Below are positions 4,391-44,849 of a stretch of DNA of 64,000 bases, in pieces. Each line of letters opens with the position of its first letter. Position 1 is the stretch's first letter. The position numbers and the translations under genes were made by a program. The notes under the pieces are model-generated. The model searched no databases, had not been told where the DNA came from, and saw only the letters and a list, made by a program, of their open reading frames with translations. Source of the DNA: Entomortierella parvispora E1425 (lineage: Eukaryota; Fungi; Mortierellomycota); the NCBI GenBank assembly GCA_020891255.1, contig BQFW01000002.1, positions 1,116,001-1,180,000 of the forward strand, in the 5' to 3' direction.

Positions 4391-7300
4391 GTCCTACCAG
4401 CCGCCCCTCTCTGCGTCCAGGTTTACGAAAGTTTGTCCAGCGAAGGTCCGTGGGTTATAATAAAATGCCTTAATGTCAAGATTATAGGGTTGTTTTCTTG
4501 GAGCAGTCTCTTGCCGATGACGAATAACCAGGAGCGAGAGGATGATGTCCAGGTGCGGGCAACAACTGTGCCGAAGCTGATGTACAGCTAAACTTCCCGA
4601 AATGCATAAAGACGTGAGAATAAATTAGTTGAAAATACAAAGGTTTGTGCTTTTGTCTCGGATTTTTGTTGCACTTACCGATGCTGTAAAGAAGGTTGTG
4701 CTCATTCCACATGAGCCTCACTCGCGCGAGTGAACTTTGGCGAGCGCTTTGTCGAAAGGCGCTGGCCATGTCTGTGTTTGTAGTTGAGTACCCAGACATC
4801 TGGCGAGATTTTCGCCGGCGTTATGGTCTCTGTCGATGTCCCAACTGCAGTTTTCACAAAGGATGGATCTGCCTTTCTGAACTGCCCGGAAGCGACATCG
4901 GCTGCAGAACTGACTGGATCGAAACTCCGGGAGCTTCACCGCTGGGATGCCATTGGCATTCGCCTATAATGTATAAGAGAACCAGATGTTAGATATAACA
5001 CCCCTTACTCGCTTTGAAAATCGACTCCAGCAACACTTACTGTCCGCGCTAGTTCGTCCAAGGTTTTTTCCTTTCGGCCGCCAAAGTCCCCGTCACCTAT
5101 TCCAAGAACGGCTGGCGTCTCTCGATACTCCTGAACTTCAGTCGGTGGAATATTCGGGTGGGGAATATGCGCCATCTTGATAGCCGCTGCACAGACCAGG
5201 CTTCTGTCGCTTCGAATCGCCGTCCTCATATCATAAAGATCCTTCTTGAAACTGATTGATCCGTAAAAGGTCCTTAGCTTCTCAAATGCAGCGAGGCGAG
5301 GTCTGAGCCAGTCTAAGTGGTTACTATAGAGTGCGCTGGCAGCTGCCCTCCAATCGCAAACCGTTGTCCCGTTTTCCTGTGTGACCTTCACTTGTACGGG
5401 AGCGACATCTGCAATCAATGTGTTCTCCAGTTTGTCGATCCCATGGGTCTTTTTCTTTGTGTTTAGACATCCCATGTATCGCTTTTGAATGTCTTTAGCC
5501 ACGGTGTCGGTGATATCGAGGGTCTGTGAAAAGTCAGGGTACTTGGTGTGTACTGCGACCACGCTTGCAGGTTTCGCCCGGCCTGGATCTACCCCGATCC
5601 CGATAAAATGCGGGCCACCCAAAGACTGAACACGCTGCGCTGTTGAAAAGAGGTCCTGGACATACGGTAGGGCTTTCGCATGTACTGCTGCAGTCTTTAC
5701 GCCTGCGAGGTTTCGCTGTGCCACCTGTCCCTGCCCTGGATTTCCATGTCCAACACTGGGACCCTCATTAGGATTTTCAGTCTCACTTCCAGGCAGGCTC
5801 TCCTCCAGCACAGGATCAGGAGACGTCCAAAGCTCTGAGTCGTATATATCCAAGGACGAAGGTAAAGCGGAGGATGCAGCAAAAGGTAGAGCGGAAGGCA
5901 GAGCAAGAAAACCTTCCTCTGGAGCTACGGCAGGGATATTGTGCTGATAACCACTGCCGGTAGGACTGGGGTTGCTCTTCGTATTCTTCTTTGGGCGTAA
6001 TGTGGTCAAATCAAAAGCCAACACATGGAGGTTATGACCGTCCGTCTTGATGACACCCGTCGGAACATAGTGTCTTCGAGGTGTGTTCTCGGCGCTACTG
6101 CTCGACCCCGAATGCAGACCATGTAGAGTCACGTCTCGCAGTTGTCGTTGTTGTGTGGCTGACATGTTGCTTAAAATGTCCTTCAGCCGTTGTAATTCAA
6201 CCTCCATCGACTTGAGGGCGTTCGAGATTGATCCACTAGTCGTATGTATGTTCGCGATAGTGGGGGGAGGGTTACCAGGAAGCTGTGACCATTGCCCCTG
6301 AAACACCGAGATGCGTTGGAGTAAGTCTTGAGAATCTGCCAGCCCTGGGTCCTGTTTTTTAGCCAAACTGGAGCATTCCTTCAGGAGAGCGCAGAGTGTT
6401 TTGTCGATTGATGTGTATTCATCCAGGTGCTCCAGCTCTGTTTGAATTCTCAGGCGCAAATCAGGGATGAACAAAGCGCGCTCACTGTTCATGGCCGGGT
6501 TCATGAGAGCAGTGCCACGTCTGTACGAGGTATTTTTCGACATGAAAAAGTTGAAAAATAGCTCCCCTCTGTGGGCGATTGCTCGCTGTTCGGCGGCCAC
6601 GACCGTTCCAGTGAAGATTGCACCTAGTGCACTCTTTGTAGTTGGTGTAGGTTTGAGGTGTCGGCATGCATCAACGAACTCCCTTTCGGTTAGGTCCAGG
6701 TCCCGGTCTTTGAAGGCGATTACGGGGAATAGCGCTACTTGACTGTCGGGTCGCAGTAACGCGTTCAGGAGCAAGTGAACGGATACGGGATCGTGCAGCT
6801 TTGACCGACCAGTGCCTTCAATCGAATCCAGAAAAAGTCGTCCTTGCTCGGACTTTGAGAATTGTATCTGCTGGACAAGAACCTAGCGAACAGGACAGAG
6901 ACAAGAGTGAGCGACGAGCAAAGAGATAAAGACCATAAAACATCGCACTATGAATGTCAAGCACTTACTCGCTGCTTAAGTTCGCCGACGTTTCTCAGAA
7001 CAAGGCTGCAGATTAAGTCGTGCGCGCTGCGTGCGCAAGATTCCAAGAACTTGGCGCCGACCGCCTTCTCTGGTCTCTTTGTAAAGGGGTCGAATGGGAG
7101 CCCGGCGGCCTGCTGGTTGCTATGCTTCTTTTTGAACTCCAGTACCACCGTAAACGCAAGCCGCTGTGTGCCTTCGCACTTGAGCTGAGTGAGGGTAGCG
7201 TCTGTAAGATCGTTCCATCTCCAAAGGGCTCGTACAACATGATATACGAAGATTTGACTTGTGTAGACTGGACCAAGTGCATCTTTTCTTTTCTTGACGT

Positions 7301-10300
7301 CGTCTTCGTTAAGTGTGGGGTGAGACTTGAAAATAGACAGCGCATAGTCTTGCAATACCGCGATCGCCGACCAAATTGCGTCAGAGTTTGCTTTGACCAG
7401 GTCCATCATCATTGTCCGCATGGATCGGTACGTATCCTGTACTTCCAATAGTGTCGATCCCTTCATCTGGCTTTCAAGCCCTTTGTAAAGTGTGGAGCAC
7501 AGAGTACCCGGCTGGAGTGCCACCTGGGAAAACGTTGTTTCCAGAGTAGCTTTAATGTGCGTGGTATCGTGCTCCCTCCTTGTCGCAGTGACTGAGCCAG
7601 CCGAAGACGTCAAGTCGCCCATCTGTTTGTTTACAGCATGTCGCGCCTTTCTGCTTGAACGGTTGTAAATGGGCTTGGAGGTAGCCGCCTTTTTTTCGTT
7701 CGTCTTTTTCTTCTTCTTTTGGCTTGCCTCCTGCGAAAGGGAACGCTTCTGACTGGTCGAGGCAGTAGGAATCGAAGATGAACCTGCTGGGTTGTCACCT
7801 TCCAAGTTCTGGTTGACTAGATCCGTCGCAAGTGGTGCAGATCCAGTTTGGTTGTCAGAGTTGCTGGTGTGGGTTGCGTTCGGAGCGACGGGATGGACTT
7901 TTGGAGGGCCTATGGACTGATCGTATAGCCCCACGGGTCCCTCATTCCTAGACCAGCCAGGGGGAAGACTCTCCGACCAAGCTGTGCGATCATGATGCCG
8001 AATCTTTGAAAGATAGTCTGGCCGCTTTCTATCCCTCATGAATCGCAGAAAGCTATTCATAAAGTACAGTAGTGTTTAGAAAGGGATCTTCGGCATGGTA
8101 TGCTTTCTCTCTGCATAGCAATATGATACCATACCCTTGCTTAGCCTCTGTCTGACTTGAGCTTCCTCCTTCCGGGACCACAGGCAATGATGAGGCGCTT
8201 GACCTGATGAAGGACGGATTGATGACATTCGTTCAGAAAAGAAAAGAAAAGAAAAGAAAAAAAAAGAAAAAAAAAAAAGAGTGACAATTTGAGATATCTT
8301 ACCTTGCGGTTGGTTTGGTCCGCTTGTTCCTGTTTGAGAAATCATAGGGGAGACAACAAAGTCAGTACTGCTGTCCTTGAGTGCCTTCCAATAGGACAAA
8401 TGCTTGACACTTACCCATGTCGAAGCTTGGAGACTTCATTCACGATATGCAGCATCAAGTGGTCAACGAGCTTTGCTGCATTATCCTCTAAGATGATGCC
8501 GGTGTCTGTATCCTCCTTATTACGGATGAAAATATCCACGCTGTTCTCAAAGACAGCCTGATCGATCGAATTCTGAGAGCAGAACTTCTTGAGGTAGTCG
8601 AGTGCCTTTGGCTTGTCCGGCATTTCGTCCATGTCGCGGATGGTCTCCACAATCTTGGTAAGGCTTAGGCCGGGGACCTTTCGATCGTAATCATTCTCTG
8701 CCAGAACTGCCACAGCTTGCCACTGTTCATAAGACAGCTCAAGACTCCCGAGAATGGCCCCGATATCATATTTGTAATACCGGCCGCCTTGAGGACTCTT
8801 GCGCAATACGTATGAAGCTCCGTGGAAAACATTGTCGCTATCAGCCGACGCGACCACCGTGTCCTCCTGCTCTTCTTCAGCATGCCTACTGATGCAAACA
8901 TCGGCCTCCCCTGGGCAGACGTGCACCTTCCATCCCTTTGAGCCGAGTTGATTGCCAAGTGTGTCCCAGTCCTTATGAGTCATCGCCTTTGTATTTATCC
9001 ACGCCTTGAGCAGTGGGCCGCGAATCCTCTTCACTAACCGAAGTAGTTGGTTCTTTGTTGGCTTGGCCTTTCCGGCTGCAGTTTTCAGGGACATTTGCGA
9101 TTGCAGATGGGCAAGATGGGACAAAACGGATGATGCCTTGTGGACAAACGCTGCAATCGCTCCGATTCGAGAACGATCTCTTTTCTGGCGGGCGTATGTC
9201 TTTTGGATGGATCTGGCGCCGTCAAAGTGGAGTATTCCTTGGTCTTTAGAAAACTTTTTCGACAGTGTTTTGTCGATCGCCGCCGAGATGTCGATCTCAA
9301 ATAATGCCGAGGGGACTGGAGGGAGCGTAGACTCGGAGCCGATCAGTGATAAAAACTCCGTGTTGCTCTTGATGGCATCAGTCTCAAGAGGAGGGACTTT
9401 GGTCAAAAAAAGAGAAATCTCAACGGGAAGCATGTAGGGCGCCTCGAGGTTGGCCGAGGAGTTCATGTGATTTTTCATTTCCGCAAAGATCTTGTTGCAG
9501 TGGATGCTTCTCGCAAGCGCAAACAAGATAGCAGGAATGTCGATGTGGACTCTCGGGAAAACATCTTTGGGCACAACTTCGGGATACTCCAGGCCTTCGA
9601 TGTTGGCCAAATACGGCCAGGTGCTGGCCACGCCCATCTATCACACCAAAGACGATTACACAGCTTTAGTTAGATGGATATGTACTACGCTGTCTACAGT
9701 TCACTCTCCTGATGGATCTAAGAGTCCGACTCAAAGAGGACAGCGGAAGTTTGCGCTCTTTTCGCAGTGCATATGCCAAAAGCCTTGTCGCGAAAAGATA
9801 CACTGTTTTTGTCCATAGAGCGTGATCCTTACAGTCGGTGACGGCAAGCTCTGAGTGTCCAAGGGCGGTGATAGATGATGATGAGTGCAGAAAAGTAGTT
9901 GTTTGTAATATTCAGTGAATAAAGCAGGGATGGTGAGAAAGGAAAGGTGCGGGGATGGTGAGAAAGGCAGGGAGCAAGAAAGGACGAGTGGATGATCGAT
10001 AGCTGATGGTTCAGGCCATCAGATTTCCCAAAAAAACCTAGGATAATTTTTATTACTGATGCCCCTCGCAGTTGCACCCTACAAACACAATAACACTAAT
10101 ATATTATACATAATGAACTCCATAAAACGAAATTATTCATTTCGAGAAGTTCGTCTGTAGAATTGGTGGCGATAGGCCTCATAGATCTATCAATAATTGC
10201 ATTTTGCCACCAATTCAAAGTACCAATCTTCCCCCCCCCCTGCTTTCAACCCATCCTTGCCGTGTGCTGGGCAGTGTGCTGGGCAGTTCAACAACTGACA

Positions 10301-10481: not shown

Positions 10482-12179
10482 CTACTGGGAGCCAAGGCTA
10501 GGGAAGAGGTTGGTGTCGTCAACGTTGACGGAGGAGGCACCGCGGGCACCACCGCGACGGGGAGCAGACGAAGGGGCTCCACCACGGGCTCCACCGCGAG
10601 CTCCACCACGCGCACCACGCTCGCCACCACGTCCGCCACGGAAGGCGCCGCGGGGAGCAGGCTCACGGGCAGGCTCGGTGTAACGAACCTCAATGTCCTT
10701 GATCAAAACCTTGGACTCCTTCTTGCCCTTCTTGGTCTTGGCAACAGAGTCAGCACGCATCTTGATGAAATCGCCAGTCTCCTCGACCTCGAGGACCTTG
10801 GCATCCTTCCACTGAGAGTCGTCAGCGCCAGCGTTGGCGGCACGAGCAGCGGGGAGGGCGAGCTTGAGGGCCTTGGCAGCCTTCTCCTGGAGATAGTCAT
10901 CAAGGGTCTTGACAACAACCTCGGGCTCAGTGGGTTCGGGAGTAGCAACAGCAGCCTCCTCGTTCCTACAGAATTCCAAATGTCAAACGAACCTGTTGTC
11001 AGCAAGGGTGCGTTATCTTTTGCGATGTTTTCCATCTTCCTGGTGCGTCAAAGTCCATCCTGGCACAGGTCTCACTAGTACACCAAAACTCTAGCACACT
11101 TACAAGGCATCCTTCTCACCCTCGAGAGGGGCAGTGGTGGCATCACCCATAACCTTGTGCTCCTTCTTGTCACTGTTCTCAATGCCAGTGCCGGAGTGAC
11201 GGTCAAAGCCACCGTGGCGACCGCCACGAGCTCCACGGGGAGCACGGGTGCCGCGGGGGGCGCGAGGGGTGGACTCGCCATCGCGAGGAGCACGGTCGAA
11301 ACGGGGTCCACGAGGAGCTATAGAGAGTGAACAAGAGACTGTTATTGAACAATTCCATTCCCACGCTACGAATAGAACATCATCTCTCTTTGAATCCTGA
11401 TCTCCTGCTAATATCCCGATCGCGCTGACAGCCTCTCTTGGGCGTTTCTATCCAAGTACGGAGCTCAATTGGCCCAGTTGTGGGGAAAAGAGCAGGGGTT
11501 CAGACGTGTTCCATCACATGAATTCCGGCTGCAGGTGGTCCCATAGGAGCAAGTCGTTTTGAGAAGAAGAGTCTCCAAGCTAACCACACCTCAAACTGTC
11601 GAATAGCGGTCAAATCATCTTCACAATGATGCCCAGGCAGGGGTGTCGTATGAAGGCGAAGAGGTGGATGACGGCGCCGATATGGATGGTGGGTAGAGCG
11701 ATGCATGGGCCAGGTACAAAGGAAATTGGGTATTTCGGCCTTTTGAGTTGACTGACACGCGAGTTCCACTGCACACCGTCCTTGCCACCCCCTCTCGTGT
11801 GAGCGACGGCAGGAGTGAGTCGGCTGAGTCAGGGAAGGAGAGACTGGACTGGACCCAAAAGAAGGGCCAGACACTGAGAATAATAGAGGTCCAGTTCCTT
11901 TCGCGGTCGACTGTCTTTTGAGTTCTTCCTGTGCTCAACGTGGGAGGAGGAATCGCAATGTGGGTTCAAAGAAGGTCTTTTACCATCGCTGTAGTTGCTC
12001 TCCCTGGGCTTGTTGGGGCGGGCACTGTCCTTGCGGGGTCCCTTGTTGTCGGCAGCCTTGGAGGCGGCGGGGATAGAAGCAGGCTTGGCCACAGGCTTAG
12101 TCTGCTTGACGGCGGGGATCTGGATCTCCTGATCCTGCGCGTCGTCGTTGAGGAGGTCGAAGGGGTTTGCAGAGGCCAT
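10482..12179 (-). CDS. STM1: Stm1/SERBP1 (HABP4_PAI-RBP1 family) ribosome/RNA-binding protein
   Basis: Exons 12179-11984, 11317-11104, 10965-10482. N-terminal SANPFDLLNDD, FDRRS..G, KTLDDYL, RGG repeats, C-terminal DDTNLFPSLG are typical of the family. Confidence 0.85.
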
Positions 12180-12713
12180 TGAATGGAATGTGAAGTGAGT
12201 GCGGAGAAGGGTAAGGGAGAAAGGCAAAATGCAAGCACGGAATGGGACTGTTGTGAATGAATCTCATCGCCAATGTCTGCCAGCTTCGTTTTCTTGGGAC
12301 TGTTCTTTTTTCTTTCTGCTCGCTTCCAAGAAGAAAGACCTTCGACGCGTGAATGCATCCATCCATCCATCCATCCCCCCTCTCTTTTCCCTCACGGCCA
12401 CGCGTCGTTGCACCTAGGGCATCCCATGACAGGCAGATGCATGACTCCTTCCTTCATCCCTCAATTGCTCTCTCCTTCTCGAGTTGATGGATGGATGGAT
12501 GGTTGGCTGGCAGACAATATCACGTGATGGTTTATTTCTTCGGGCGTCCTTATGCCGCCCTGGGGACCAATGGGTTTTACCTTGGTCCAACTTTGGTAAC
12601 AAGGACAAAGTTGATGAGCTTCCACCTTGTTCGCTCGCCATCGGGTTTGGGGGGTTTGTTTTTCGTGTGTTGTGTGTGGTGTTTTGTGCCTAAAGTTCTC
12701 TCTTATTCAAACG

Positions 12714-14157: not shown

Positions 14158-17100
14158 ATGGGCCTTAAAGGCTGGTTCCCCTTTCTAAGAAAACGGGGGT
14201 ATACGCCCAGGGTTATACACACATCCGCAATGATACAGGACCTGGGTGTTCGCAAGGCACGAATAGATGTGCTCTCGTTCTTTTGCATAATCAGAAACGC
14301 GTACTCCCGCTGTAAGCCTGAGGATGCTCACAAAATCCTCGAACGGCATTTGGCGAGGTTTGGCTCCAAGTCAAATCTGGTATTGTACATCGACGGACAG
14401 CAGGCGTTGGAAAAGGAAGAAACAGCTAGGCGTCGCAAAGAGTCTCGGACGGTTGCAGCTGCCAAGTGCATGAAAAGCCTGCAGAATCTGGAGGACCTCA
14501 TCAACCAGAATTCGCGCCCAAGAAAACGTCATTTTTCTGACGCCAGATCGACTCTCGCTGCAACCTTTTACTGGAGTTTAGATGACCGAAGGTCATTTGT
14601 GAAATACATGGAGGACGCTGGTTGGTGTGTACAGATCTGCAAAACAGAAGCCGATGTTGCTATTGCCGTCGATTGTCAGCCGGATGACATCGTTATATCT
14701 CAGGACAGCGACTTTTTGGCTTACAACACAGTCTCAACTTTATGGCGTCCAGTCTCCAAACACGTGCTACTCGAGTATAAGCTTGCCAACGTTTGCCTTG
14801 CGCTCCAGCTGAGTCGGGCGCAGCTCACCGCACTCGCCATTGTGTCTTGCAACGACTACAACAGGAATCTTTACTCACTTGGTCCCTTAACAAACTACTC
14901 GCTTATCAAGGGCATTTGTTCTCCAGGTAAATCTCATGCGAAACAGGCATGATATTCATTGACAGCTGGATTAATTATTCCCCCATTTCTTACAAATTAT
15001 TTTAGATATCGAGTCCATCGTCACTGCATATCTGGGTCATGTTGTAGTCTCAAACAAAAACAAGGAGGGGCAGACGTTTAGGATCTCTATTCAAGTGTTT
15101 GTGAACAAGCAGCAAACACCTGTCCCCATCCAACCCGCTCCAGTTGTCTCCCACGACGATACCACAACCTCCAACCCTTCATTTGAAACCCTTCAAAGCA
15201 AATTCAGATCTATATGTTCGCGTTATGAGGAAATGAAGAAGATCCACCCCCTGGACAGGTATTAGGAAGCTTCCTTTTATTTTTACATAGAGTATCGCTA
15301 TCAACTACAATAGTCCAACTAATACACATTTCATCCTCTCGTACTAGCATCTGCAACCGCGAGATCGTACGTCTAAAGTCATCTCATACCAAGAACCGAT
15401 ACAGAACGGTGGAGTCGCCAGCCTTCATTCGGACCCCTCCTCGTGTCCAACCAGCTAACGAAGAGAATTGCGCGTCGCTCATACTTTCTCCCCAAGGCGG
15501 TTCTTCCTTGGAGGAACAAGAGAGTCATGCCCCGTTGCCAAGGACTCGAATTCCTAACAATCGTCCACGATACTCATTCAAGAGAATCGAGCACAAGAAG
15601 GTGAAAAAGCGTCCACCTCCTCCGAAGATGAAGCAATATACGTGGAAGCCACACAAAGAACAGGATCCAAAGCCTGACAAGGCACAGCCAGCACCGAAAC
15701 CAAAGGCACCGCTGAGAACACTGGAGAGCTTTGTGGAGCCTGCAAAGACGGAGAAGATTGGTGTCATCCGATCCATGCGGTATCAACATCCGACATCCTC
15801 ATTATCCATTGGGACTTTGGCGGCTAATGTCAAGCTCGCTCTTGAGGACGAAGACAGTCTCCAGTATGAAGTTGTCACAGTTATAGAAACCGCTGTAATG
15901 GAGGCAACGCGGGTCAAACGTCAGGCGCAGGTATTGATTGGGACTTTCATCGAGTATGTGGACCGCAATGGAGTTACGGAAGAGGATCGCAAACATCTGG
16001 ATCAGTTCAGTCCAAGAGTCGATATGAGCAACATAAAACATGACGCAGACAATCCTGTCGAGGTCGACGACGATGGCGATGAGGTTCAGGGCATCATTGA
16101 CGACGATGGGGCTGAGGAGGTTGAAGATGATGAGGGTGAGAGTGAATCAAGTAGCAAGGAGGGACAAAGTCCTGTTAAAAACAAGAAAGGGGGTCGCGCC
16201 GTCACAAAGTCTGGATTCGCTCTCGCTTTCTTGTGCTGTCTCTACACTGGTGCCCCGCGAACCAGGGCCGATGTCTGTTCGTTTGTCGATCGCTTGAAAC
16301 ATCTAGGGCTATATGAACCGCCGCCTTGTCCAAGAGCCAATAACACGATGCCATTCACTCCTGTCGATTTACTTGAGTCAGCAGCCGGTCAGTTGGAGCG
16401 CGAGCTGAAAATGATGTACAAGAACGGAACATGTGATGTGCACAAAACGGTATGTGCACAAGTGCGTAATACATGCACACCATGGCTTCCGTTGTTCAAA
16501 AACCATGATAACAGTCCCACTAATTCTTGATCCTTGACTAATTTTAGTTGGCGGCGCAACTGGGCAAAGGCCTTTTGGCAGTATCGATGGCGGACATTCA
16601 AATTCGAGGGGACGTGTCAGCCATTGAAAACTATCTTGCCCTCAATAGACATCTTACAAATCCCAGACGAATCATCCCAATAACCTCGTCAGACCAGCCA
16701 AACCTCGATTTTAGCGAGCGCGAATTGGCAGGATTCTTTTACAAGAGAGGAGGACTTTTGAAGAAGAACCTGCTGGATTTGGCTGGCAAGGATGGATTTT
16801 TCAGGACCTTGCCCGAGATCCAGATCTGGATTGGGACCAAGACCCCAGGCTTTTTCATCAACAACTATATCGCAGACATCAGCTCAAGCAGTAGCAAAAA
16901 GGCAAGGTCGAGCTCTCGTGCCAAAATCAAGTTGAAGTCCATAGCAACTCTTAGGGAGCACCTGGAACAGTTTGACCAACCTGGATTCGATCCAAAGTCG
17001 TACAATGAGGACGGCTATATCTCACGTGGTATAGTGCGGACAGATGGCTTTGGAATTCAACTGTTGGTGTTTAAGCTGAAGGAGCTGCAAGCTGTCCGAT

Positions 17101-18357
17101 ACCGGAGGCTCTCCCCGGACCTTCTGCCGGAAAGGATAACAAGTACGTTAGGGGGCACAGACTACTTCTTGACTGAAATTCGCAACGTCATTCGAACTTC
17201 AGATGATGTCGAGCGCCTATTTCCCGGCGCTAAAGCCAAAGACGTCAAGATATTGACATTGGACGCAGGGCAGGCGTTTGTTGTAGGCGCGTATGCCTAT
17301 TTGCCCGAGGACCCCCACGCCCATTACAACCTCGCAGTCAATCAAAAAGCCGCTTACCAACCAGCCTTCCGCCATAGACGATGGCAAGAGGAAGAAAAGG
17401 GGTCAAAAGTAGAAGGTCAAGCCCAATCAATCACTGATATGGAGTCGCGTCTTCCGCCTCTTCGTGGCCATTCAGCAAGTGTCGCCAACTACCACAAATA
17501 CCTGCAGACTAAAGAGGTTGGCCCACACCTTGTGGAGGGAGATGAGGGGACAGTGGAAGAGCGTCTGTTGAACTTCTATGGAGGAAGGAGGCACCGGTTT
17601 AAGAAGCACCAGTGGGATCTGAGGCGGGCACAGAAAATGGAGTTTCAGGCCATTGCAGCCAGACTACTTGGTATAGTCGGAGGGAGTCTAGGAGAGCATC
17701 GGAAACCAACAAACCACGTCCTCATTGCCGTGGGACTTGGACAATTCAAAAGCACCGGCAGATTGTCCTCGCTGCATTCTTCCTTCCTGGACTTTTTTAT
17801 ACCTCTGGTAAGTATACCGGTTTGAAATGTGAATCCCTGTTCGTGGTATTATAACTAATGTATTCTATCCTCCTGCTGATACTATCTAGGCGCGGTCATT
17901 AGGCTACATTGTCGTCGGGATCAACGAGTTTTACTCCTCAAAAAAGTGCCCCAACTGCGAAAAGTTTGTAGCTCAAGTGACCCTACGCCAGTTGTATTGC
18001 CCACACTGTCAACGGTTTTATCACAGGGACGTGATGGCGGCACAAAATATGATGAATGTTGCTCAGCGACATTTGGAGCACCAAAGCAGACCACGTTACT
18101 TGCAGCCAGTGGCGGCCGATGGTCGTTACCCCTGGGAGGATAAGACTGTGGGCTCCACTTCATCCGCAAGTGGAATCAGCGACTCTAGCAACAACGCAGC
18201 TATTGTAACTAATGACAGCCCGGCAATGGCAAGTGGCAGCACCAGTGGCAGTTCTGCAAGGACGAGCACCAGTATCAGCTCTCCTCCTTTATTTCGTAAG
18301 AGAAGAACCCACTCGGACGGTCCCCAAGACCTCAGCAAAAAGCCGAGGGAGTTTTAA
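14158..18357 (+). CDS. FEN1/XPG-like 5'-nuclease fused to Fanzor (TnpB-like RuvC + Zn finger), copy 2, 1283 aa
   Basis: Five exons 14158-14926, 15006-15258, 15348-16449, 16548-17807, 17890-18357 total 3852 nt in one open frame. FEN motifs: MGL, RID, IDG-x5-K-x6-R, TEAD, QDSD, NDY. Fanzor motifs: VRTDG, LTLDAG, AVGLGQF, INEFYSSKKCPNC..CPHC, HRDVMAAQN. Confidence 0.92.
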
Positions 18358-18477
18358 TGGTCTCAAACCAAAATTTCGTGTATATGGAAATACACACCAC
18401 CGTGGGGTCTTCTTGTCACGTGCTCACTCATTCGAGGGGGGCGGCATAAGGGGACCCTATTTCTTCGCGTCTTCACT
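18358..18477 (+). ncRNA. Candidate Fanzor omegaRNA (scaffold to 18457, guide from the flank starting 18458)
   Basis: Position between the stop codon and the element's right end is where TnpB/Fanzor omegaRNAs are established to lie. Hairpin GTGTAT-ATGGAA-ATACAC (18378-18395); GGGTC (18405-18409) can pair with terminal GACCC (18453-18457). No expression data. Confidence 0.5.
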
Positions 18478-31928: not shown

Positions 31929-34290
31929 GGAATGAAGCAAGGAAGGGCCCGTGTGGGCGTAGAGCATACCACGATAAGTCATAATAAATGAGGTGGTGGA
32001 TATCAGAGAGACATGCTTTTCTAGAACGCAAACACTACGCAGTTAAATCTCGGAACGGTAAAAAAGGTTTCCATATCAGACCCACTCTCTGGGCCCGAAG
32101 GGTCATGCTTGAGTACTCCATGGATTTCTTATCGATGATAGGCCGATTACAATGGGATTGGGCCTAAATGCAATTAGCACAGCACAAAAATCTGGTCCCT
32201 GTTGCAAGGACCATCCCTCCGTCCCCTTCCTGGCCACCTTTGTGGGGCCAGACACCTGAATCAAGCATCAACCACCCTCTTTCTCTGACACCTTTTTTTA
32301 ATTTGTCTCTTTTTGGCTTTGTTCTTTGTGATTTTTCATATGACAGAGAACGGGATGACCAAGAAAAAGAGCAGGGGTAAAAGAGAGGGCACGTTGTTTT
32401 TATTAAGAGAGAAAGAGGCTGGTGGTACGAACTGGCCGGTAAAGAAACGGTGCCACCGAGCCCCTTTCAGAGCCTCGACAGATGGCGCGATAATCTTTTT
32501 TTTTCTTTCGTGTCTGTGGGGAAGAGGGACAGCGATAGTGGCTTCCAACTATCAGATAAGACTCGACGTGACGGATGGACAATCTGTGGCCATATAAAGA
32601 CTCGTTTTCTCTCTCTCTCTCTCTCTGTCTCGTTATCCTCCCAATAGTATCGTTGTATGAGAGCTTACAGGGGAGGGAAGAATTGAGATTCTGCGATGGC
32701 AAGTGGCGATCGTCGATAAAGTGGATGGTTTTCATTTGCTCTCTTCGTTCTCGCTCGCGTGGCCTCATGCGAGATAAGGGACAGGGGAAAAAAATCAGTT
32801 TTTTTTTTTTTTTTTTTTTTTTTTGGATGGAGCTTTTTGAGACTTGTGCCTTTTGTGTGTTGTTGGCGCTGCTCATTTCTCGGCGCTGCGCGGGATTCTG
32901 TATTTCAAGGGGCCGGGTCCTACGCCAAGCAAGCTTTAGTAGTCATTCTCGGGGACCACACACAGTCCTTTTCTCACCTTGCGGCCAGTCAATGGTTCCT
33001 CCTTTTCAATTGGCAAATGGATAGCTTGCAGTCTAACCTCAAAGGACAAGACCTTTAAGTGAATGACGCGTTCCAAGGACCTTTGAGTCGAGAGTGCAGC
33101 GGCCTAGACACTTTTAACAAAAGGGTCAAGAAAACAAAGTAAAAAAAGGCGGGGCCAGTGGGAAGAGTAGGGAGCACAATATAGAAAACAAGAGCTTTGG
33201 TCAGGCGATCAGTTCGGCTTTGTTAAAGAAGAAAGGTGACGACGGATGACGAAGGTTTTCTATGGTCCTGGATCAGGGGAGAGAGAAGGCGGGGGGTCCG
33301 ATGACAGCGAAGACCGACAGAGAAGAGTAGGAAATGGAAATATTAAAAGAAAGACCCTTTTTTTTTATGGCGGTTGGTGGCAACCTTGATGCTTCTTCAC
33401 ATGCTGAAGGATCGATTTTTTTTTTTTTTTTTCATGTTTGTGGGCACAGAGCCAAAACAGAATGCAAACACAAAAAAAAGAAGGATGCATCTTCTCCGTT
33501 TTCGTGCTCGGGTGCAACAGGACAGACAGAGACAAGAGTCCGAGCCCGAGCCCGAGGGGGAAAAGAGAAGCGAGCCTTTGGATTTTGGGTTGGTTGGCTG
33601 GGTTGGATGCTTTGTTCGGAAATTTATTTTGTCTGCTCCTTTCTGGCCGATGGACGGACCCGGAGAGGGTGCAAGGAGAGGCAGAGGGTGATCGAGGGTT
33701 GATGTAGAAAGGCAAGAGAGAAGAAGAAGCCTAGGACCAAGACGGATCCGTTGGAGAAGAGAAGAGAGAGAGAGACAAAGAAGACCAGAAGCAATGACAA
33801 GAGAGAAGAGAGGAAAAGAAGGGGCGTACTTGTCCCTCAGTATTCTTATCCAATTCAATCAGCTATGACAATTATCTCAAAAGGTGGAGTCGTCTCTCTG
33901 TCGTTGCACTAAAGTGCGTTTCGCGCGCTCTTATCTCTCCTGCCTCCCTGTCCTTCGTTGTTCTTCACCTCTTTCTTTCCTTTGTCGCTCTGACTCTCGT
34001 TTCCTTTCCTTCTTTACATTGCCTAACTGTCGGCTCTTCCCTACTCTCTCCACTCCTCCCCTCCACTCCTCCCCTCTCTTCCTCCAGACTTCTGTCCATC
34101 CGCAGTACTATCTCTTGTTGGTCTGCCGTCGATCCTTGCTCCTCTGCAGCACCACAACACATATCCTTCCCTGCCCTCATTCCTTATCTTCTATCCGATC
34201 TTCTCTTTACTCTCTCCAGCTCTCCTCCCCAACTGCACCTTTGACCTTCTCCCTTCTCTTTTGTCTTCCTCTCCCACCCCCCGCCCGGAT

Positions 34291-36618
34291 ATGGCCACTG
34301 CCTCCCCCTCCCCTTCCTCCTTTACCACCACCGCATCCCACCTTCAATTGCTCCTCCAGCAACATCACGCCCTGCAGAAGCAAGAGCAGGAGGCACAAGA
34401 TAGGCTCCAGAACGAAAAGCTTCTCCGAGAACAGGAACAATTGCAAAAGCGACTAGATAATGGTCCTTCCTCCACAGCATCATCTTCTACGACCACTTCG
34501 TCCTCGACCCTGGCTGCAGACGCACAGTCCGTGGCCGCTTACATGAGCGCTTTCCTCAATGTCTCTACAGCCACCAGCAACAGAACCAACACCCTGAAGG
34601 CCTCTTTGGAGGCTATGACCATTGACCCCTCTCAAACCTCGCTCTCGTCCTTGACGACCCCCAACTCCGACAGACATCCCTCGGCAATGGGCACGATTGC
34701 TCCCTCCTCCACGATGCTTAAACCCACAGCGACCACGACCTCATCCTCCTCAAAATTGCCTCAAACTTCCTCTTCTTCTAAATCGCTCAAGGTTACCATG
34801 AAATCGCACAGCAAAAAAGTACCCGTGGCCACCTCGTCGCCCTTGCCCTCGACAGGCGCCAGCTCGGGGCCAGTGTCCGAGACACTGACGCTCCACCGGC
34901 AAGAGTGCTACAATTGTGGGGTGACAAAGACTCCGCTGTGGAGACGAACCGCCGATAGATTGCATTCGCTCTGCAACGCCTGTGGATTGTACTATAAGCA
35001 GTACAAGGCCAATCGGCCATTGGTCGCCCGACCGACCAGCAAGGACACCACGGTGTCGACGATCGCAGTGGATAATGGCCACAGCAGCACGGTATTGGAT
35101 CCGCCACATTTGATTAAGAGGCGAAAGGTGATGGAGGGCGACGGATCTGTTGGGTCGGTTTCGGTCAAGGTTGAACCCTCCGAAAAAAGCAGCACAGGCG
35201 CTGACCAACAGCAGCAACGGGATGAATCGTCATCTTGCTCACTACCCCTCAAGGCCCTCCTTCCACAGCCATCTGCCCTGCAGGATCAGAGGGGGGAGAC
35301 GGCGGTGGCACCCCGCGCCTGGAGCGAGAACGACGATGATCGTGATCACGAGAGCGGTAGTGATAGTGACAGCGACTACGAGACCGCATCCTCTCGGGGT
35401 CGACGTGGCGTGTCGGAAGAAAATTCCGATGGCGACTCTGATGAAGAAGAGGAGAGGGCAGAGCCAGAGTCGCGACAGAGCTCATCCGAGACTGACGAAC
35501 AAAGGCGAGAGGTCTCTGTGGACAGTCCTTCTCATCCGAGTGATTCTCATAGCAAGGGCAATACAGGCTCTGGAACAGCTGCAGGTGGCATCGAATGTGC
35601 CAACTGTGGGCAGACCGAGACGCCTCTTTGGCGCAAAGATGCCAAGGGTCAATCCATCTGCAACGCGTGTGGGTTGTACTCGCGTCTGCATCAGCGGGAC
35701 CGACCGGTGACGATGCGCAAATCCAAGATTGCAAGGCGCAAACGGGATTGGGGGGCGGCACAGGAGAAGCTGGCGGCGAGTCAAGAGTCAAGTGTTGCCA
35801 GTGCATCGGCGACAACAGCAGCAACAACTACTACACCGGGAGCTTCCACCGAGAGTAACAAGAACAAGAAGAAAAAGCATGTGCCTACGCCCTCCAAGGG
35901 ACAGGCGGAAAAGACTGTCACCCGCGGTGCTGATGCCGAGGAGGATGCTGAAAGTCTGGCAATTCCGATGCCAACCCCGATCGAGATGCGTTCCATGAAT
36001 ATCCCTGTCCACTCTGAGGCTGATACAGATGAACTTGAACTGTGTTTGATGCCAGAAGACGATGAAGACACCGGAGCAGTAAGTAAACAAGAAAAAAAAG
36101 AGACTACCTATGCTTTTTGCCACATTTGAACGCGCGCCTCGGATATGAAAAAAAAAAAAACGCCATGGCGCCTTCAAGCTTCTCACGCGTTCACTTTCTT
36201 CCTTTTCTCATAGCACATCCCCACGCCCATCTCAAACGCATCCATGTCGCCCAACATGTCCGATTCCTTGTCTACCATGGCCCTCAACAGCGGCCCGCTC
36301 TCTCCTTCTTTGACGGCCTCGCCGCCCACCCCAGCCCTGCCCTCGCCTTTCTTGAACCTGAACCTGAACCCGCTTCTGATGCAGCAATACCAACAGCATT
36401 TGCAGAATCAGATCGCTCAAGGTTTGTCAGCACCCACGTCCTCTGCCGCAACTGCTATCCCAGGGTCAGCGGCGATGGAGGGATTGCTCCACTCCAATCC
36501 ATGGTTGAACTCGATGTACAGTGGTGGCCATTACCCTGGGTTGGCATCTTTGAATAATGTTTCGACGATGCCACACGATCCAATGCTGCTGGCAAGACTT
36601 CAACAAATTCAACAACAA

Positions 36619-40915: not shown

Positions 40916-42215
40916 TAGCCGGCATTCATCTCCTTCATTCACCTCCATCACTCGACGATCTTTCTGCTCTCCATCTCTCACATTCTCTCATCTTCTTCAG
41001 TCTCTTGGCACTCCTTCCCCGCACAGAGCATTCTCAACAGCGAGGTCGGACCTTTCCTTCCGCCTCGTCCTCGGATCAGTCTCTCGCCCTTCCTTCTCGG
41101 TCTGTCCTTTTGGTAAGATCCCTCGGACCATACATCGCGTACCTGCAGCTTGCCCGTCCTTTTTTTTCATACATCGATCAGACCATGGTAAACTTTGGCT
41201 CTGTCTGCACCCTGTCTGTCTGTTGTTTCTTCAGAGCAGCCTGCCGAGAGCCAAGAGACGATGATCTCTTTCCGTCTTCCTATTCCCTTTTTGTCCATGT
41301 TCATTCTTGACCACAACACACCTGCCTTCATCTTCTACACCTTTTCTCCTCTCCCCCTTTGCGCGTTTCGGATCCAGACCGAATGACCGCATGCTCCGCT
41401 TCATACTCTGTCCCCTTTTGCTCTGCTGCGTGAGTTGTCCGTCGTTCCTCCCCTCCCCCCCCCCCCCCCCTCTCTCTCTCCCCCCCCCCCCCCTACTTTT
41501 CCTCCACGCGAAATTACTTTTCCTCGCCATCGCCAATATTGAAATGAAATTTCTGGTTTGGTCACAAACCCGATATCCAACTTCCCCTAGTCCTTTTGGG
41601 TCTGTTCGCCCTTCGGCGTCCATCGTAATTACAATTTGTAAATTGCTGCCCGCTTGCACCTGCTCCACTTGCTCCTCCTGTCTTCCCTCCTGCCCTGTTT
41701 GCCCTGCCCCTCGATGACGGTGTTGTCCACACCAGACTGCATCTGAATCAGGAATAGGGTTGAGAAGAAAACAATGGGCCGCTGCCTGCCACTAATCTCT
41801 CCACACCGGTCCATGGCAGTTGGGTGTTCTTGTGTCGAGCAAAAGCGATATTCTATTCTCGGCCGCTTAGCAACGGCAGAGAGGATGTCCCTCCTTTTTT
41901 TTGTCAACTGTTTGAGGATCAACAATCTGACACGCTGGGCTGGACAGTTGAAGTGTATCCTTGGTTGAGACACACTTCTTGCGAACAATCGCTTTCTGGT
42001 CTAGCCATACTGACATGCTCAAGAACTCGTGGACTTTTTTTGCTCGCTCCAATCCACCCTCTCTCTTCTTCAACCCCTCTCGTCTTTTCTTCTTGGCACC
42101 TTGTCCAATCCTTACCTAACTCAACAAAACAAAAAGTGCGCTGCAAGCTGACCAATAATTCTCCGTCATCCTAACAGACAGTAACTCTCCTGAGTTGGAT
42201 CGATTGGCCACCGAT

Positions 42216-44849
42216 ATGCCTTCCACCGTGACCTCCTCACCAGCGGAGCCTCTCTTGTCTTCATCCCCTTCTCAATTATCACAATCGCAGCCAATGTTAC
42301 CCTCTCCAGCGACCTCGGACTCCACTTCGACCTCGATCCTTGGTCCACTACCAACATTGGGCATGCGTCCGACTTCGCACTCGTTCTCGCTTCAACGGCC
42401 ACTCTTGGCTGAGGATGTGAAGAGGACCAGAAATTCAAAAAGACTCTCCCTTTTGGTGCCTCCCTCACCAGGAAAAATCGAGACTCTGGCCACCATTGCC
42501 GCCGCTGCCAACTCTCCCTCCTTTCCCCAGCCAGCTACGCCCTCCTTCACATCAGCAATGCCTTCTATTCCCAGCCGACGTCGTACAATGGCCATCTCGG
42601 CCCCGATATCGTTGCCTGCAGCCTCATCAGAGAATACCACAAGGAGACAGAGTCAGTTGTGGCTGGATCAAGCACTCCCCTCGCCACGGATACCCCTTTC
42701 TTCCAGCACTTCAGAGTTTCAACAGCAGCAACGACGTCGACCCATTTCTGCGTACTTTGCAGATTTTAGTGTGGAATGTGGAGCAGCTTCTCCCTACACT
42801 ACTCAGCCAGTTTCTGTTTTGCCTCACCTTTATTTGGGAGCTGAGCACAATGCCATGGACACAACTGTACTCGGACAGCTCGGGATCACAGGAGTGTTGA
42901 ATGTGGCGGTCGAGATCGCACAGGAATCAGCAGCAACAGGGTCGACACTGTCGGTCAAAGAGATTCCAAGCGACTCTAGGCGAAAAGATACCAGCGGCGA
43001 CAACCCTTGTCACTGGAAGCAAGGAATTCAGTACAAGAGCTTGGCCTGGTCGCATCACCAGCGGAATTTGCTTGAGGAATTCCCTGAGGCCTTTGAGTTT
43101 ATTGATCGGATCCGGACGGAAGGAGGAAAGGTTCTGGTTCATTGCCAGCTAGGCGTCTCGCGTTCAGCGTCATTAGTGATCGCCTATGTGATGCAGTCCC
43201 GGAACATGGGTTTGAATGAGGCGTACGATTTTGTCAAGGCGCGTTCGGCAGTCATCTCGCCCAACATGGGTCTGATGTACCAATTAGCAGAATTTGAAAA
43301 GGCTCAAAAGTCATCAGAGTCAGGAACAGTTTCAGGAGCAAGACGAGATGGGAAGAATGGAGACCAGGACGCAAACACGGACGAAGAAGCGTACCCTTAT
43401 CCAACTGATATGGACACCGATTCAAGCTATGACCAACAGCAAAGTTTGGCTAGAATGGCAGATACACACGCGGTAGACATGGTTCCGCCAACTCCTGTAG
43501 CCACGACGTTCTCTCTATCATCGACCACACTTCACCCTTTGGCTATGTCTTCAAACGGACCGACCCGTGTAGCGACGCGCCCTCGCTCTTCTCTTTCACG
43601 ATCCATTCTGGTACCAGTGCCTCAGGACATACTCAAGTCCTCCGCAAAGGACGAGTCGTTGTCTGTATCAACTACAGGACTCGCCTCAGAACTGACCCTG
43701 GACTCGCCAATGAATGAGTCGCCGACTACACTCTCTCCTCCAGCACCTCTCTTCTTTTCAGAGGGTGTCTCGAGCCTTTCACCGTCCAACTCGCCATCGT
43801 CGACTTGCTCGCTCTCTTCGTTCACCACGTCGAATTATTCCCGACCCTCTTCGACTTCTTCTATAGCATCCGTCATGACTGTTCCAACAGCCTGTGGAGG
43901 ATCAGGGCCAGGATCAGGAGGAGCATCTGCAGCAGGGGTACCAACCAAGAATGTGACCAAACTCATAGTGATCAGTCCCATGGTCGGCAAGCTGTATCCA
44001 ACGACCCAACCTCCAGAGCAAGGGATGGCGATAGCTGCAAACCAAGGAAGTGTAGTGACTCCACTACCTTTGACTGCAACAGAGGCACCATCGGCAATAG
44101 CAGCGCCACAGCCCTTGCGCTCTCACCGACCGTCCCTTCCTGAAATGGTGTCTCCTCAAGCTCAAGCAAAGAGAATGTCATTGCATCGAGCTCACACATC
44201 CACGGTGCCCACGACTCTGACATCAGGACCACATCAGCGCCCGCTCCCTCAGCATCCTCAACAACTGCAACAACTGCAACAAAATACCCATGCATTACCT
44301 TCGTTGTCAGCATCCCCACCAACCCTGCCACCCACGCGTTCACATACCCTGGCCACGGTTTTAACTCGACCTTGGTCAAGTTTTCATAACACTCATCTTT
44401 CACAGCAAGACTCCCTTCAGACTCAACCAGCCCTACAACACTATCCACTTCACGCGCGGCAGTCCTCCAGCAACTCGACGATGATGGCCTCTCACGTTAT
44501 GAACCATACCCAGGACAGTGCCGCTGGTGTAGGAGGGACGCTTTTAGTCCCTTCCGCCAGTAGTCCCACACGTCTTCCTCAGCCTTCTCCGTTTGGATCT
44601 AGTCGCATCAGAGCCGTTACTGTGGACGGGAGCGAAAGTTTTGGCGGGATGGGGGATACCGCCCTGCGAGGCAGTTACTCCGCGGAGCAAGATCCCTCAG
44701 AGTCCATTTTCTCGCCACGACCCTTCTCCCCGCCTCCACCCTCGCTTTTGGCCGCGGCAGCGACGACGACGGTCGATCAGGTGTCTGCGCTTACGAACCG
44801 GAACCGGTCCTTTGCAGGATTTTATCAATCGTTGAGGATGGAGGGATGA
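42216..44849 (+). CDS. Dual-specificity (MAPK-type) protein phosphatase
   Basis: PVSVLPHLYLGAE, GITGVLNVA, VLVHCQLGVSRSASLVIAY (HCx5R), ARSAVISPNMGLMYQL. Confidence 0.93.
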   Translation: MPSTVTSSPAEPLLSSSPSQLSQSQPMLPSPATSDSTSTSILGPLPTLGMRPTSHSFSLQRPLLAEDVKRTRNSKRLSLLVPPSPGKIETLATIAAAANSPSFPQPATPSFTSAMPSIPSRRRTMAISAPISLPAASSENTTRRQSQLWLDQALPSPRIPLSSSTSEFQQQQRRRPISAYFADFSVECGAASPYTTQPVSVLPHLYLGAEHNAMDTTVLGQLGITGVLNVAVEIAQESAATGSTLSVKEIPSDSRRKDTSGDNPCHWKQGIQYKSLAWSHHQRNLLEEFPEAFEFIDRIRTEGGKVLVHCQLGVSRSASLVIAYVMQSRNMGLNEAYDFVKARSAVISPNMGLMYQLAEFEKAQKSSESGTVSGARRDGKNGDQDANTDEEAYPYPTDMDTDSSYDQQQSLARMADTHAVDMVPPTPVATTFSLSSTTLHPLAMSSNGPTRVATRPRSSLSRSILVPVPQDILKSSAKDESLSVSTTGLASELTLDSPMNESPTTLSPPAPLFFSEGVSSLSPSNSPSSTCSLSSFTTSNYSRPSSTSSIASVMTVPTACGGSGPGSGGASAAGVPTKNVTKLIVISPMVGKLYPTTQPPEQGMAIAANQGSVVTPLPLTATEAPSAIAAPQPLRSHRPSLPEMVSPQAQAKRMSLHRAHTSTVPTTLTSGPHQRPLPQHPQQLQQLQQNTHALPSLSASPPTLPPTRSHTLATVLTRPWSSFHNTHLSQQDSLQTQPALQHYPLHARQSSSNSTMMASHVMNHTQDSAAGVGGTLLVPSASSPTRLPQPSPFGSSRIRAVTVDGSESFGGMGDTALRGSYSAEQDPSESIFSPRPFSPPPPSLLAAAATTTVDQVSALTNRNRSFAGFYQSLRMEG

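Follow-up and report, generated by a model that had tools for sequence, protein, structure and literature searches.

The gene read on the minus strand at 9637-4718 of the window (the whole stretch of Entomortierella parvispora DNA analysed here, 64,000 nucleotides) raises the question of whether a FEN1/EXO1-type nuclease and a Fanzor are truly joined in one protein and, if so, what their union is kept for. The reading favoured here, with a probability of roughly 85%, is that this gene (copy 1) belongs to a mobile element and fuses a FEN1/EXO1-type nuclease to a Fanzor1-type nuclease, both being under purifying selection and diverging together. A second gene of the same design (copy 2) lies on the plus strand of the window.

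Independent reconstruction of the splice model for copy 1 predicted six minus-strand exons that total 4,491 nt and translate, with no internal stops, into 1,496 residues followed by a stop codon, thereby reproducing the phase-consistent six-exon product proposed in the initial annotation. Its five introns are all GT-AG and span 77-99 nt. Exon 1 (8415-9637) encodes the FEN1/EXO1-like 5' nuclease domain (residues 1-407), and is followed by two micro-exons, namely exon 2 (8303-8329, 27 nt), with a basic KRT(K/R) patch, and exon 3 (8135-8203, 69 nt), coding for a Ser-rich linker. Exon 4 (6969-8052), which is collinear with the relatives, contributes a disordered linker with a KKKKK patch (residue 552) and then the REC-like start of the Fanzor, where ALQPGTL occupies residues 618-624 and PGTL is located at 621. 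Exon 5 (5041-6882) comprises the Fanzor REC/WED region and RuvC-I (GVDPG, D1233) up to GDGDF, and exon 6 (4718-4963) holds the relocated RuvC-II glutamate (E1428), the zinc ribbon (C1435/C1438/C1451/C1454), the RuvC-III aspartate (D1461) and the stop codon. A basic, disordered linker connects the nuclease half to the Fanzor half. All 14 motifs quoted for the two copies were found, in collinear order, at 4808-7520 on the minus strand for copy 1 and at 15802-18048 on the plus strand for copy 2.

Residues 1-407 of copy 1 constitute, as judged from catalytic residues and modelled fold, a genuine though divergent 5' nuclease domain of the FEN1/EXO1/XPG type. A family profile matched EXO1 (2.9e-12), Rad2 (5.8e-11) and FEN1 (~1e-9), with GEN1 also among the matches. 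The AF2 model of the domain (pLDDT 92.6, pTM 0.90) displays a PIN-like N+I nuclease fold, and its best 50 Foldseek matches in the PDB are all FEN1, EXO1 or Rad2/XPG (probability 1.00, E down to 6e-9), one of them being an XPG-containing repair complex; the matches among the Swiss-Prot AlphaFold models are all FEN1 and span residues 1-406. The seven acidic residues of these enzymes are all present (D33, D139, E244, D246, D266, D268 and D316), together with the Lys and Arg of the helical arch (K146 and R153, within DGxxxxxKxxxxxxR). The +7/+14 spacing of D139, K146 and R153 equals that of D86, K93 and R100 in FEN1. Relative to FEN1, some 54 additional residues separate the first acidic residue from the second, and the arch is extended by some 33. 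Catalytic positions are kept in 42 to 52 of the 52 family members, the opposite of a family with mostly mutated acidic residues; K146 is retained in 51 and R153 in 50, and glutamine replaces E244 in 10. On the contrary, Pfam cut-offs are not reached by this domain of copy 1 (22.0 versus 24.9 bits for XPG_I and 17.4 versus 24.2 for XPG_I_2), and just 19/52 members match XPG_I even weakly. An XPG_I score below the cut-off, in a family whose profile nonetheless reaches EXO1 so clearly, indicates a divergent branch.

Outside the FEN domain, copy 1 has the residues of a complete Fanzor1-type effector, its fold being modelled on a homologue. The RuvC residues are D1233 (GVDPG), E1428 (PEFRSS) and D1461 (DRDHNAGEN); GDGDF occupies the canonical position of the RuvC-II glutamate, E1428 being the relocated one, a pattern that fits the relocation described for Fanzors (PMC10530073). 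Pfam recognises the Cas12f1-like_TNB domain (PF07282) at 35.5 bits, above the cut-off of 26.3, with its CxxC...CxxC ribbon, and profile matches of the Fanzor part in the PDB comprise ApmFz2 (a Fanzor2), TnpB and SpuFz1. The model of homologue P0105 (residues 340-1160, pLDDT 83), which is 20-28% identical to copy 1 and collinear with it, matched the Fanzor1 structures SpuFz1 (E 1.1e-11), PpFz1 (5.6e-9) and GtFz1 (1.5e-8), and, far behind, Cas12f (6e-5), TnpB (5e-4) and ApmFz2 (2e-3). As modelled on this homologue, the REC/WED/RuvC architecture resembles Fanzor1 more closely than it does Fanzor2 or TnpB.

The gene lies within a mobile element of 5,573 bp (4585-10157, minus strand), bounded by a TA target-site duplication whose 5' copy is found at 10158-10159, preceded by TC (10161-10160), and whose 3' copy is found at 4583-4584. 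Its ends are inverted repeats of 25 bp, the 5' one (10133-10157, CAGACGAACTTCTCGAAATGAATAA) being conserved in relatives and matching the reverse complement of the 3' one (4585-4609) at 20/25 positions. Where metagenomic relatives have other flanks, their homology to the window breaks off exactly at 4583/4585. In a contig of another strain, X3, position 4580 adjoins 10156 (4 letters being ambiguous), so that 5,575 bp are left out, and this junction is the exact empty site of the element, the TC being retained in the empty allele. Since TC and TA are also found ahead of the element in three relatives whose flanks are otherwise unrelated, 4/4 independent insertions follow 5'-TCTA, and from these sites and the empty allele TCTA is predicted as the TAM. 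The fusion gene takes up 4,920 of the 5,573 bp and is the only gene-sized reading frame. By ORF size, no DDE transposase gene is contained in the element (other ORFs reach at most 143 residues), which makes it non-autonomous. Copy 1 sits in an intact, recently mobile, non-autonomous element, whose new insertions require a transposase acting in trans. Its TA duplication and inverted repeats are those of TA-duplicating elements such as Tc1/mariner-like and Spu-1-like ones.

The last exon and the 133-nt tail that extends from it to the end of the element (4717-4585) together form a candidate omegaRNA scaffold (4585-4963, minus strand). Nucleotide identity to the relative is 88% in exon 6 and 76-81% in the tail, versus ~72% in the other exons and 44-62% in introns, and synonymous difference drops to 0.33 in exon 6 versus 0.62-0.64 elsewhere. 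The region shows a fold z-score of -2.8 and conserved hairpins around the stop codon, a modest structural signal, drawn from what are in effect two sequences and a single compensatory pair; Rfam returned no match for it. By analogy with TnpB and SpuFz1, the flank directly 3' of the element (4563-4582, minus strand, CATCAGCTTCGGCACAGTTG) is predicted to be the guide or target segment, and no differing letters are listed for it in the empty allele of strain X3.

Copy 2 likewise gives a clean splice product, of 1,283 residues from five exons, and contains the FEN residues D37, D79, K86, R93, E164, D166, D184, D186 and D233 and the RuvC residues D947, E1141 and D1175, so that full catalytic sets are located in both copies, as had been claimed. 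The two genes were rightly described as very divergent, their FEN domains sharing 27% identity over 209 residues (E 1e-13) and their Fanzor halves matching only at the level of short motifs. Collinear proteins are found at NCBI for Podila, Dissophora and Mortierella. Separate trees of the FEN and Fanzor parts exhibit an identical deep split and identical sister pairs. As this common split separates copy 1 from copy 2, the fusion must be older than their divergence.

Selection was evaluated against a metagenomic relative (L005) that is 70% identical to copy 1 in amino acids and has all six exons in an intact frame of 1,536 residues. Over the whole protein the dN/dS ratio is 0.15; by region it amounts to 0.13 (FEN domain), 0.16 (middle) and 0.10 (RuvC), these values being approximate as synonymous sites are close to saturation (pS ~0.6). 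Together with (i) retention of the catalytic residues, (ii) matching trees, and (iii) relatives carrying both modules in a single ORF, they support the proposal of a family under purifying selection. The further proposal that both activities have been kept holds as regards selection on both modules, the activities themselves being read from residues and folds. The simplest source of such selection is the need of a mobile element to remain functional if it is to spread.

Among known systems, SpuFz1 of Spizellomyces punctatus (PDB 8GKH), a Fanzor1, appears to share with copy 1 the REC/WED/RuvC/TNB fold (Foldseek E 1e-11, from the homologue's model), and also has the relocated RuvC-II glutamate, zinc ribbon, introns and a basic NLS-like patch, even though sequence identity is just ~11-12% in the structural alignment. 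In the Spu-1 element that encodes it, the inverted repeats are 30 nt long, two bases are conserved ahead of the left end, the TAM is CATA and an internal transposase is lacking (PMC10432273). The two elements are alike in their inverted repeats of ~25-30 nt, in two conserved bases plus TA (CATA for SpuFz1, TCTA for copy 1) and, by ORF size for copy 1, in lacking a transposase inside. Copy 1 differs by ~600 extra N-terminal residues, which comprise the FEN1/EXO1-type nuclease (1-407) and the disordered linker, and by a low-complexity insert of 120 residues before RuvC-I. With FEN1, EXO1, XPG(Rad2) and GEN1 it shares the PIN-like fold, seven acidic metal ligands, the arch Lys/Arg and an H2TH/H3TH-type region around NDY, with matches spanning the full domain at 12-16% identity; however, those FEN1/EXO1-type enzymes are stand-alone repair proteins, while in copy 1 the FEN domain is built into a transposon protein, at its N-terminus. 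As in the cut-and-copy system of ISDra2 TnpB and IS200-IS605, a RuvC nuclease is accompanied by a guide predicted to be the flank past the right end of the element, and the TAM lies in the left flank, with the empty site as the predicted target. Unlike that single-stranded DNA, HUH-type transposon, copy 1 is eukaryotic and has a TA duplication, inverted repeats and a second, fused nuclease. Engineered exonuclease-Cas fusions likewise combine a programmable nuclease and a DNA-end-processing nuclease in one polypeptide; copy 1 is, by comparison, natural, ancient and kept by selection, with its FEN/EXO1-type partner at the N-terminus.

The fusion might nevertheless be an artefact of the gene model, the locus encoding a FEN-like nuclease of 408 residues and a Fanzor that starts at the conserved Met of FLRFMRD. 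The ORF of exon 1 does end in TAA at the donor (8413-8411), in-frame ATGs at 8060 and within FMRD could serve as separate Fanzor starts, and prokaryote-style gene callers give a product of 417 residues in relatives; the sequencing runs compared with the locus yielded no transcript. The micro-exons also lack sequence constraint, as their conservation (44-49%) is not better than that of the surrounding introns (44-62%). Their only support comes from the conservation of splice sites and from a reading frame preserved in a relative: the AG/GT sites and 27-nt length of exon 2 recur in three relatives (L002, L003 and L005), and exon 3 has an in-frame counterpart of 87 nt with AG/GT sites in the relative. 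Nonetheless, the two-protein reading is very improbable in our view, considering that (i) in two metagenomic relatives (P0031 and P0014) a single uninterrupted ORF encodes the FEN domain together with the Fanzor body as far as RuvC-I, (ii) the GT donor and AG acceptors are at matching places in the 70% identical relative, where the ATG at 8060 is not conserved, (iii) the three linker introns are all phase 2, so that the frame stays intact with or without the micro-exons, and (iv) the two modules co-diverge. No more credible are the readings that the FEN module binds DNA or serves as a scaffold without catalytic activity, or that the host has domesticated the whole gene. The members with Gln in place of E244 would suit a silent domain, whereas all seven acidic residues, K146 and R153 are intact in copy 1 and near-invariant in the family; domestication conflicts with a gene that is bounded by inverted repeats and a TA duplication, is absent from the otherwise matching locus of strain X3, and has relatives in at least three different flanks.

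If the fusion is real, its FEN module may take part in resection. An omegaRNA made from the last exon and 3' tail would read into the flank, the Fanzor module would cut empty sites flanked by TCTA, and the tethered FEN/EXO1 module would trim or resect 5' strands at the break, biasing repair to homologous recombination so that the element is copied back, for retention or homing. This role in resection is put forward tentatively, with the odds somewhat against it. Slightly more doubtful is that the fusion acts as a self-contained 'cut-and-resect' homing device, in which a guide from its own flank would find the TCTA-flanked empty allele, the EXO1-like module would make 3' tails and the cell's repair would copy the element in. 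Just as doubtful is that the module works in the R-loop or on RNA instead, where it could clip the displaced non-target strand, act on 5' flaps during repair synthesis, or cut the omegaRNA from mRNA. Enzymes of the FEN family show structure specificity for flaps, with some of them working on RNA, according to a review of the PIN-like superfamily (PMC5499597), and the candidate omegaRNA overlaps the last exon and would need to be processed out of the mRNA; on the contrary, the best solved relative by profile is EXO1, a resection enzyme, by a small margin over Rad2 and FEN1.

The role of Fanzors for eukaryotic transposons was left as an open question in the description of SpuFz1 (PMC10432273). 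Here, a second, DNA-end-processing nuclease has been kept fused to a Fanzor1 lineage through very deep divergence, which points to events after the cut as the selected step. We found no paper in the literature on such a natural two-nuclease FEN-Fanzor design. The locus of copy 1 offers a test system: the gene is intact, the ends of the element are defined, TAM and guide are predicted, and a sister strain provides a natural empty allele. For genome engineering it represents a natural counterpart to hand-made exonuclease-nuclease fusions. Should the homing-device reading prove true, the fusion would constitute an RNA-guided drive of natural, eukaryotic origin and provide a template for editors favouring recombination over end joining.

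Two metagenomic homologues, P0031 (1,168 aa) and P0014 (1,173 aa), each consist of one unbroken ORF that opens with MGV, continues with DG-K-R and GEAD and reaches GIDPG and GDGxF; these single-ORF proteins are decisive for the reality of the FEN-Fanzor fusion. Long relatives in Podila, Dissophora and Mortierella, annotated merely as hypothetical proteins, align collinearly with one or the other copy over the FEN domain, the middle part and the RuvC region, and in two of them Pfam also recognizes a TNB domain.

The motifs quoted in the initial annotation were all found, collinear, in copy 1 (9637-4718, minus strand) and copy 2 (14158-18357, plus strand; spliced product of 1,283 aa). Reconstruction based on mapped ORFs and junction sequences yielded the six-exon model proposed for copy 1 unchanged, with minus-strand exons at 9637-8415, 8329-8303, 8203-8135, 8052-6969, 6882-5041 and 4963-4718 that splice to a CDS of 4,491 nt encoding 1,496 aa; its five introns have GT-AG borders and measure 77-99 nt. 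Each of the three linker introns is in phase 2 and the lengths of both micro-exons are divisible by three, so that the frame holds with or without the micro-exons. The splice model is a prediction from sequence comparison. A run search with the gene listed no RNA run and one with its neighbour mostly DNA runs, and two possible RNA runs (X12 and X16) gave no match on the element. Intron 2 contains a long T-rich/CTTTT microsatellite (8227-8286) that is missing in the relative, and read alignment breaks there.

Pfam models do not capture the FEN-domain family, the FEN module of copy 1 (residues 1-407) reaching only 22 bits with XPG_I, under the cut-off. Exhaustive HMMER searching with exon 1 as query retrieved 211 relatives, from which a 52-sequence alignment was drawn as family profile; it exhibits a near-invariant pattern formed by MG at the start, D33, D139-G-x5-K146-x6-R153, GE244-A-D246, D266-S-D268 and N-D316-Y. 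Against solved structures, single FEN-domain sequences yielded either no match or an E value of 0.19, and the family profile alone succeeded, matching human EXO1 (2.9e-12), yeast Rad2 (5.8e-11), archaeal FEN1 (1a76, 7.2e-11), human FEN1 (about 2e-9) and GEN1 (5.7e-7). AlphaFold modelled residues 1-407 with high confidence (pLDDT 92.6), and the structures most similar to this model across the entire domain are those of FEN1, EXO1 and XPG. The N-terminal module of copy 1 is a complete though divergent member of the FEN superfamily.

Regarding the C-terminal half, exon 6 of copy 1 encodes a Cas12f1-like TNB zinc ribbon that scores over the Pfam cut-off. Alignment of the C-terminal halves reveals a conserved RuvC-I, G(I/V/L)D(P/L/A)G, a GDGxF at the position of the RuvC-II Glu of TnpB, a (D/N/P)E(F/Y)xxSxxCxxC motif and a conserved RuvC-III, RDxxxAxxN. 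This pattern is the one with a relocated glutamate that has been described in Fanzors (PMC10530073). The C-terminal family profile matches mimivirus Fanzor2 (1.2e-10), TnpB, Cas12f and SpuFz1. For the homologous protein P0105, the part following the FEN domain was modelled with a pLDDT of 83, and this model matches SpuFz1 (1.1e-11) as well as PpFz1 and GtFz1 over ~800 columns, Fanzor1 proteins matching far better than Cas12f, TnpB or Fanzor2. Because of these matches, the module following the FEN domain is a whole Fanzor1-type effector, more than a RuvC remnant.

Metagenomic contigs L001-L009 carry a relative with DNA identity of ~72%; in L005 all five introns of copy 1 occur at the same positions with GT-AG borders, and the intact frame encodes 1,536 aa. 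Comparison of copy 1 with L005 gave dN/dS values of 0.15 for the whole protein, 0.13 for the FEN domain, 0.16 for the middle part and 0.10 for RuvC, values that are rough, with synonymous sites near saturation, and all far below 1. This agrees with the purifying selection on both modules that the initial annotation had proposed. The low-complexity insert, a 120-aa Pro/Ser-rich stretch that separates RuvC-I from the WED-like pair of strands (aa 1095-1215, window ~5640-6000) and missing in most relatives, evolves faster (dN/dS 0.38).

The two copies are indeed as divergent as previously noted, with FEN domains 27% identical (E 1e-13), Fanzor halves that match at motif size only, and an overall divergence far beyond saturation. 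Separate FEN and Fanzor trees of 19 full-length proteins display the same deep split (support of 90 and 100, respectively) and the same sister pairs, and in both trees that split separates copy 1 from copy 2. Fusion of the two modules therefore preceded the diversification of the family, and from then on they have evolved jointly.

Copy 1 lies within a mobile element (4585-10157). Homology between the window and its relatives stops at ...GTTTAGCTGTA (4583), beyond which the sequence differs in each of L002, L003 and L005; at the other end, TC-TA followed by the element is common to the window and three relatives, and the flanks preceding it are unrelated. The ends read CAG...AACTTCYCGAAATG and form 25-bp imperfect inverted repeats, 20 of the 25 positions matching; they were located by comparison with the relatives and direct alignment, an automated repeat search having missed these imperfect repeats. 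In a contig of run X3, from another strain under the same species label, position 4580 is joined to 10156, with 5,575 bp skipped and four ambiguous letters, and this junction is an empty site with a single TA. The two flanks are likewise close together in the more distant run X4. Other X3 contigs show 90-95% matches to the element ends only (4586-4657 and 9988-10161), none reaching the interior; they may represent divergent relatives or, as with the ghost loci of Spu-1, "ghost" copies that lack the ORF. The 5' leader of the relatives contains a ~330-bp inverted duplication (L002:395-751, L001:1709-2025, L003:236-580), of which no counterpart is detectable in the 5' leader in the window (10157-9871).

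Besides the fusion gene, the largest ORF in the element encodes 143 aa, which leaves no room for a transposase. The architecture of the element mirrors that of the Spu-1 elements of SpuFz1, in which the repeats are 30 nt long, CA precedes the left end, the TAM is CATA and a transposase is lacking (PMC10432273), with TCTA here in the place of CATA. By that logic, TCTA would be the TAM and the 3' flank of the element the guide; for the empty allele in X3, no differing letters are listed for TCTA or the 3'-flank stretch.

Copy 2 carries the 10-bp direct repeat TATTTCTTCG at each end (12531-12540 and 18459-18468) and has inverted ends GGCGTCCTTATGCCGCCC / GGGCGGCATAAGGGGACCC. Its transposon chassis differs from that of copy 1, and the fusion family is therefore carried by at least two kinds of element. 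The two elements lie head to head, 2.4 kb apart. Between them is a gene (10482-10979, minus strand) with an RGG-rich C-terminus and no Pfam match, whose 3' end is ~320 bp from the 5' end of the copy 1 element. Ordinary host genes encode a GATA zinc-finger protein, a dual-specificity phosphatase and a bZIP factor (34261-36129, 42195-44849 and 45343-48168).

Nucleotide conservation in exon 6 and the 3' tail of copy 1 is well above that of the rest of the element, with identities to the relative of 88% and 76-81%, respectively, versus about 72% in the other large exons (1, 4 and 5) and 44-62% in introns. Synonymous difference is 0.33 in exon 6 versus ~0.63 elsewhere. Folding of this region is modestly better than that of shuffled sequences (z = -2.8), and conserved hairpins surround the stop codon, but with only a single compensatory pair. 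These features are suggestive of a candidate guide RNA; Rfam returned no match in the window.

In the literature searched, no relevant paper connects Fanzor or TnpB with a FEN/XPG-type, flap-endonuclease, PIN-like or Asteroid domain or with Mortierella. The main Fanzor papers make no mention of such a fusion, the supplement of PMC10530073 on extra Fanzor domains lying outside this comparison; that survey describes Fanzors as proteins that "often contain various domains".

Most likely, the fusion protein would act through cutting, 5'-strand processing and copying back: (i) the omegaRNA-guided Fanzor would cleave the empty site, (ii) the tethered FEN/EXO1 module would process the 5' strands, and (iii) the element would be copied back through recombination. 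In this model we infer the RNA, both nuclease activities and the repair outcome; the analysis itself shows the fold and the catalytic residues, as well as the selection, the target logic and the mobility.
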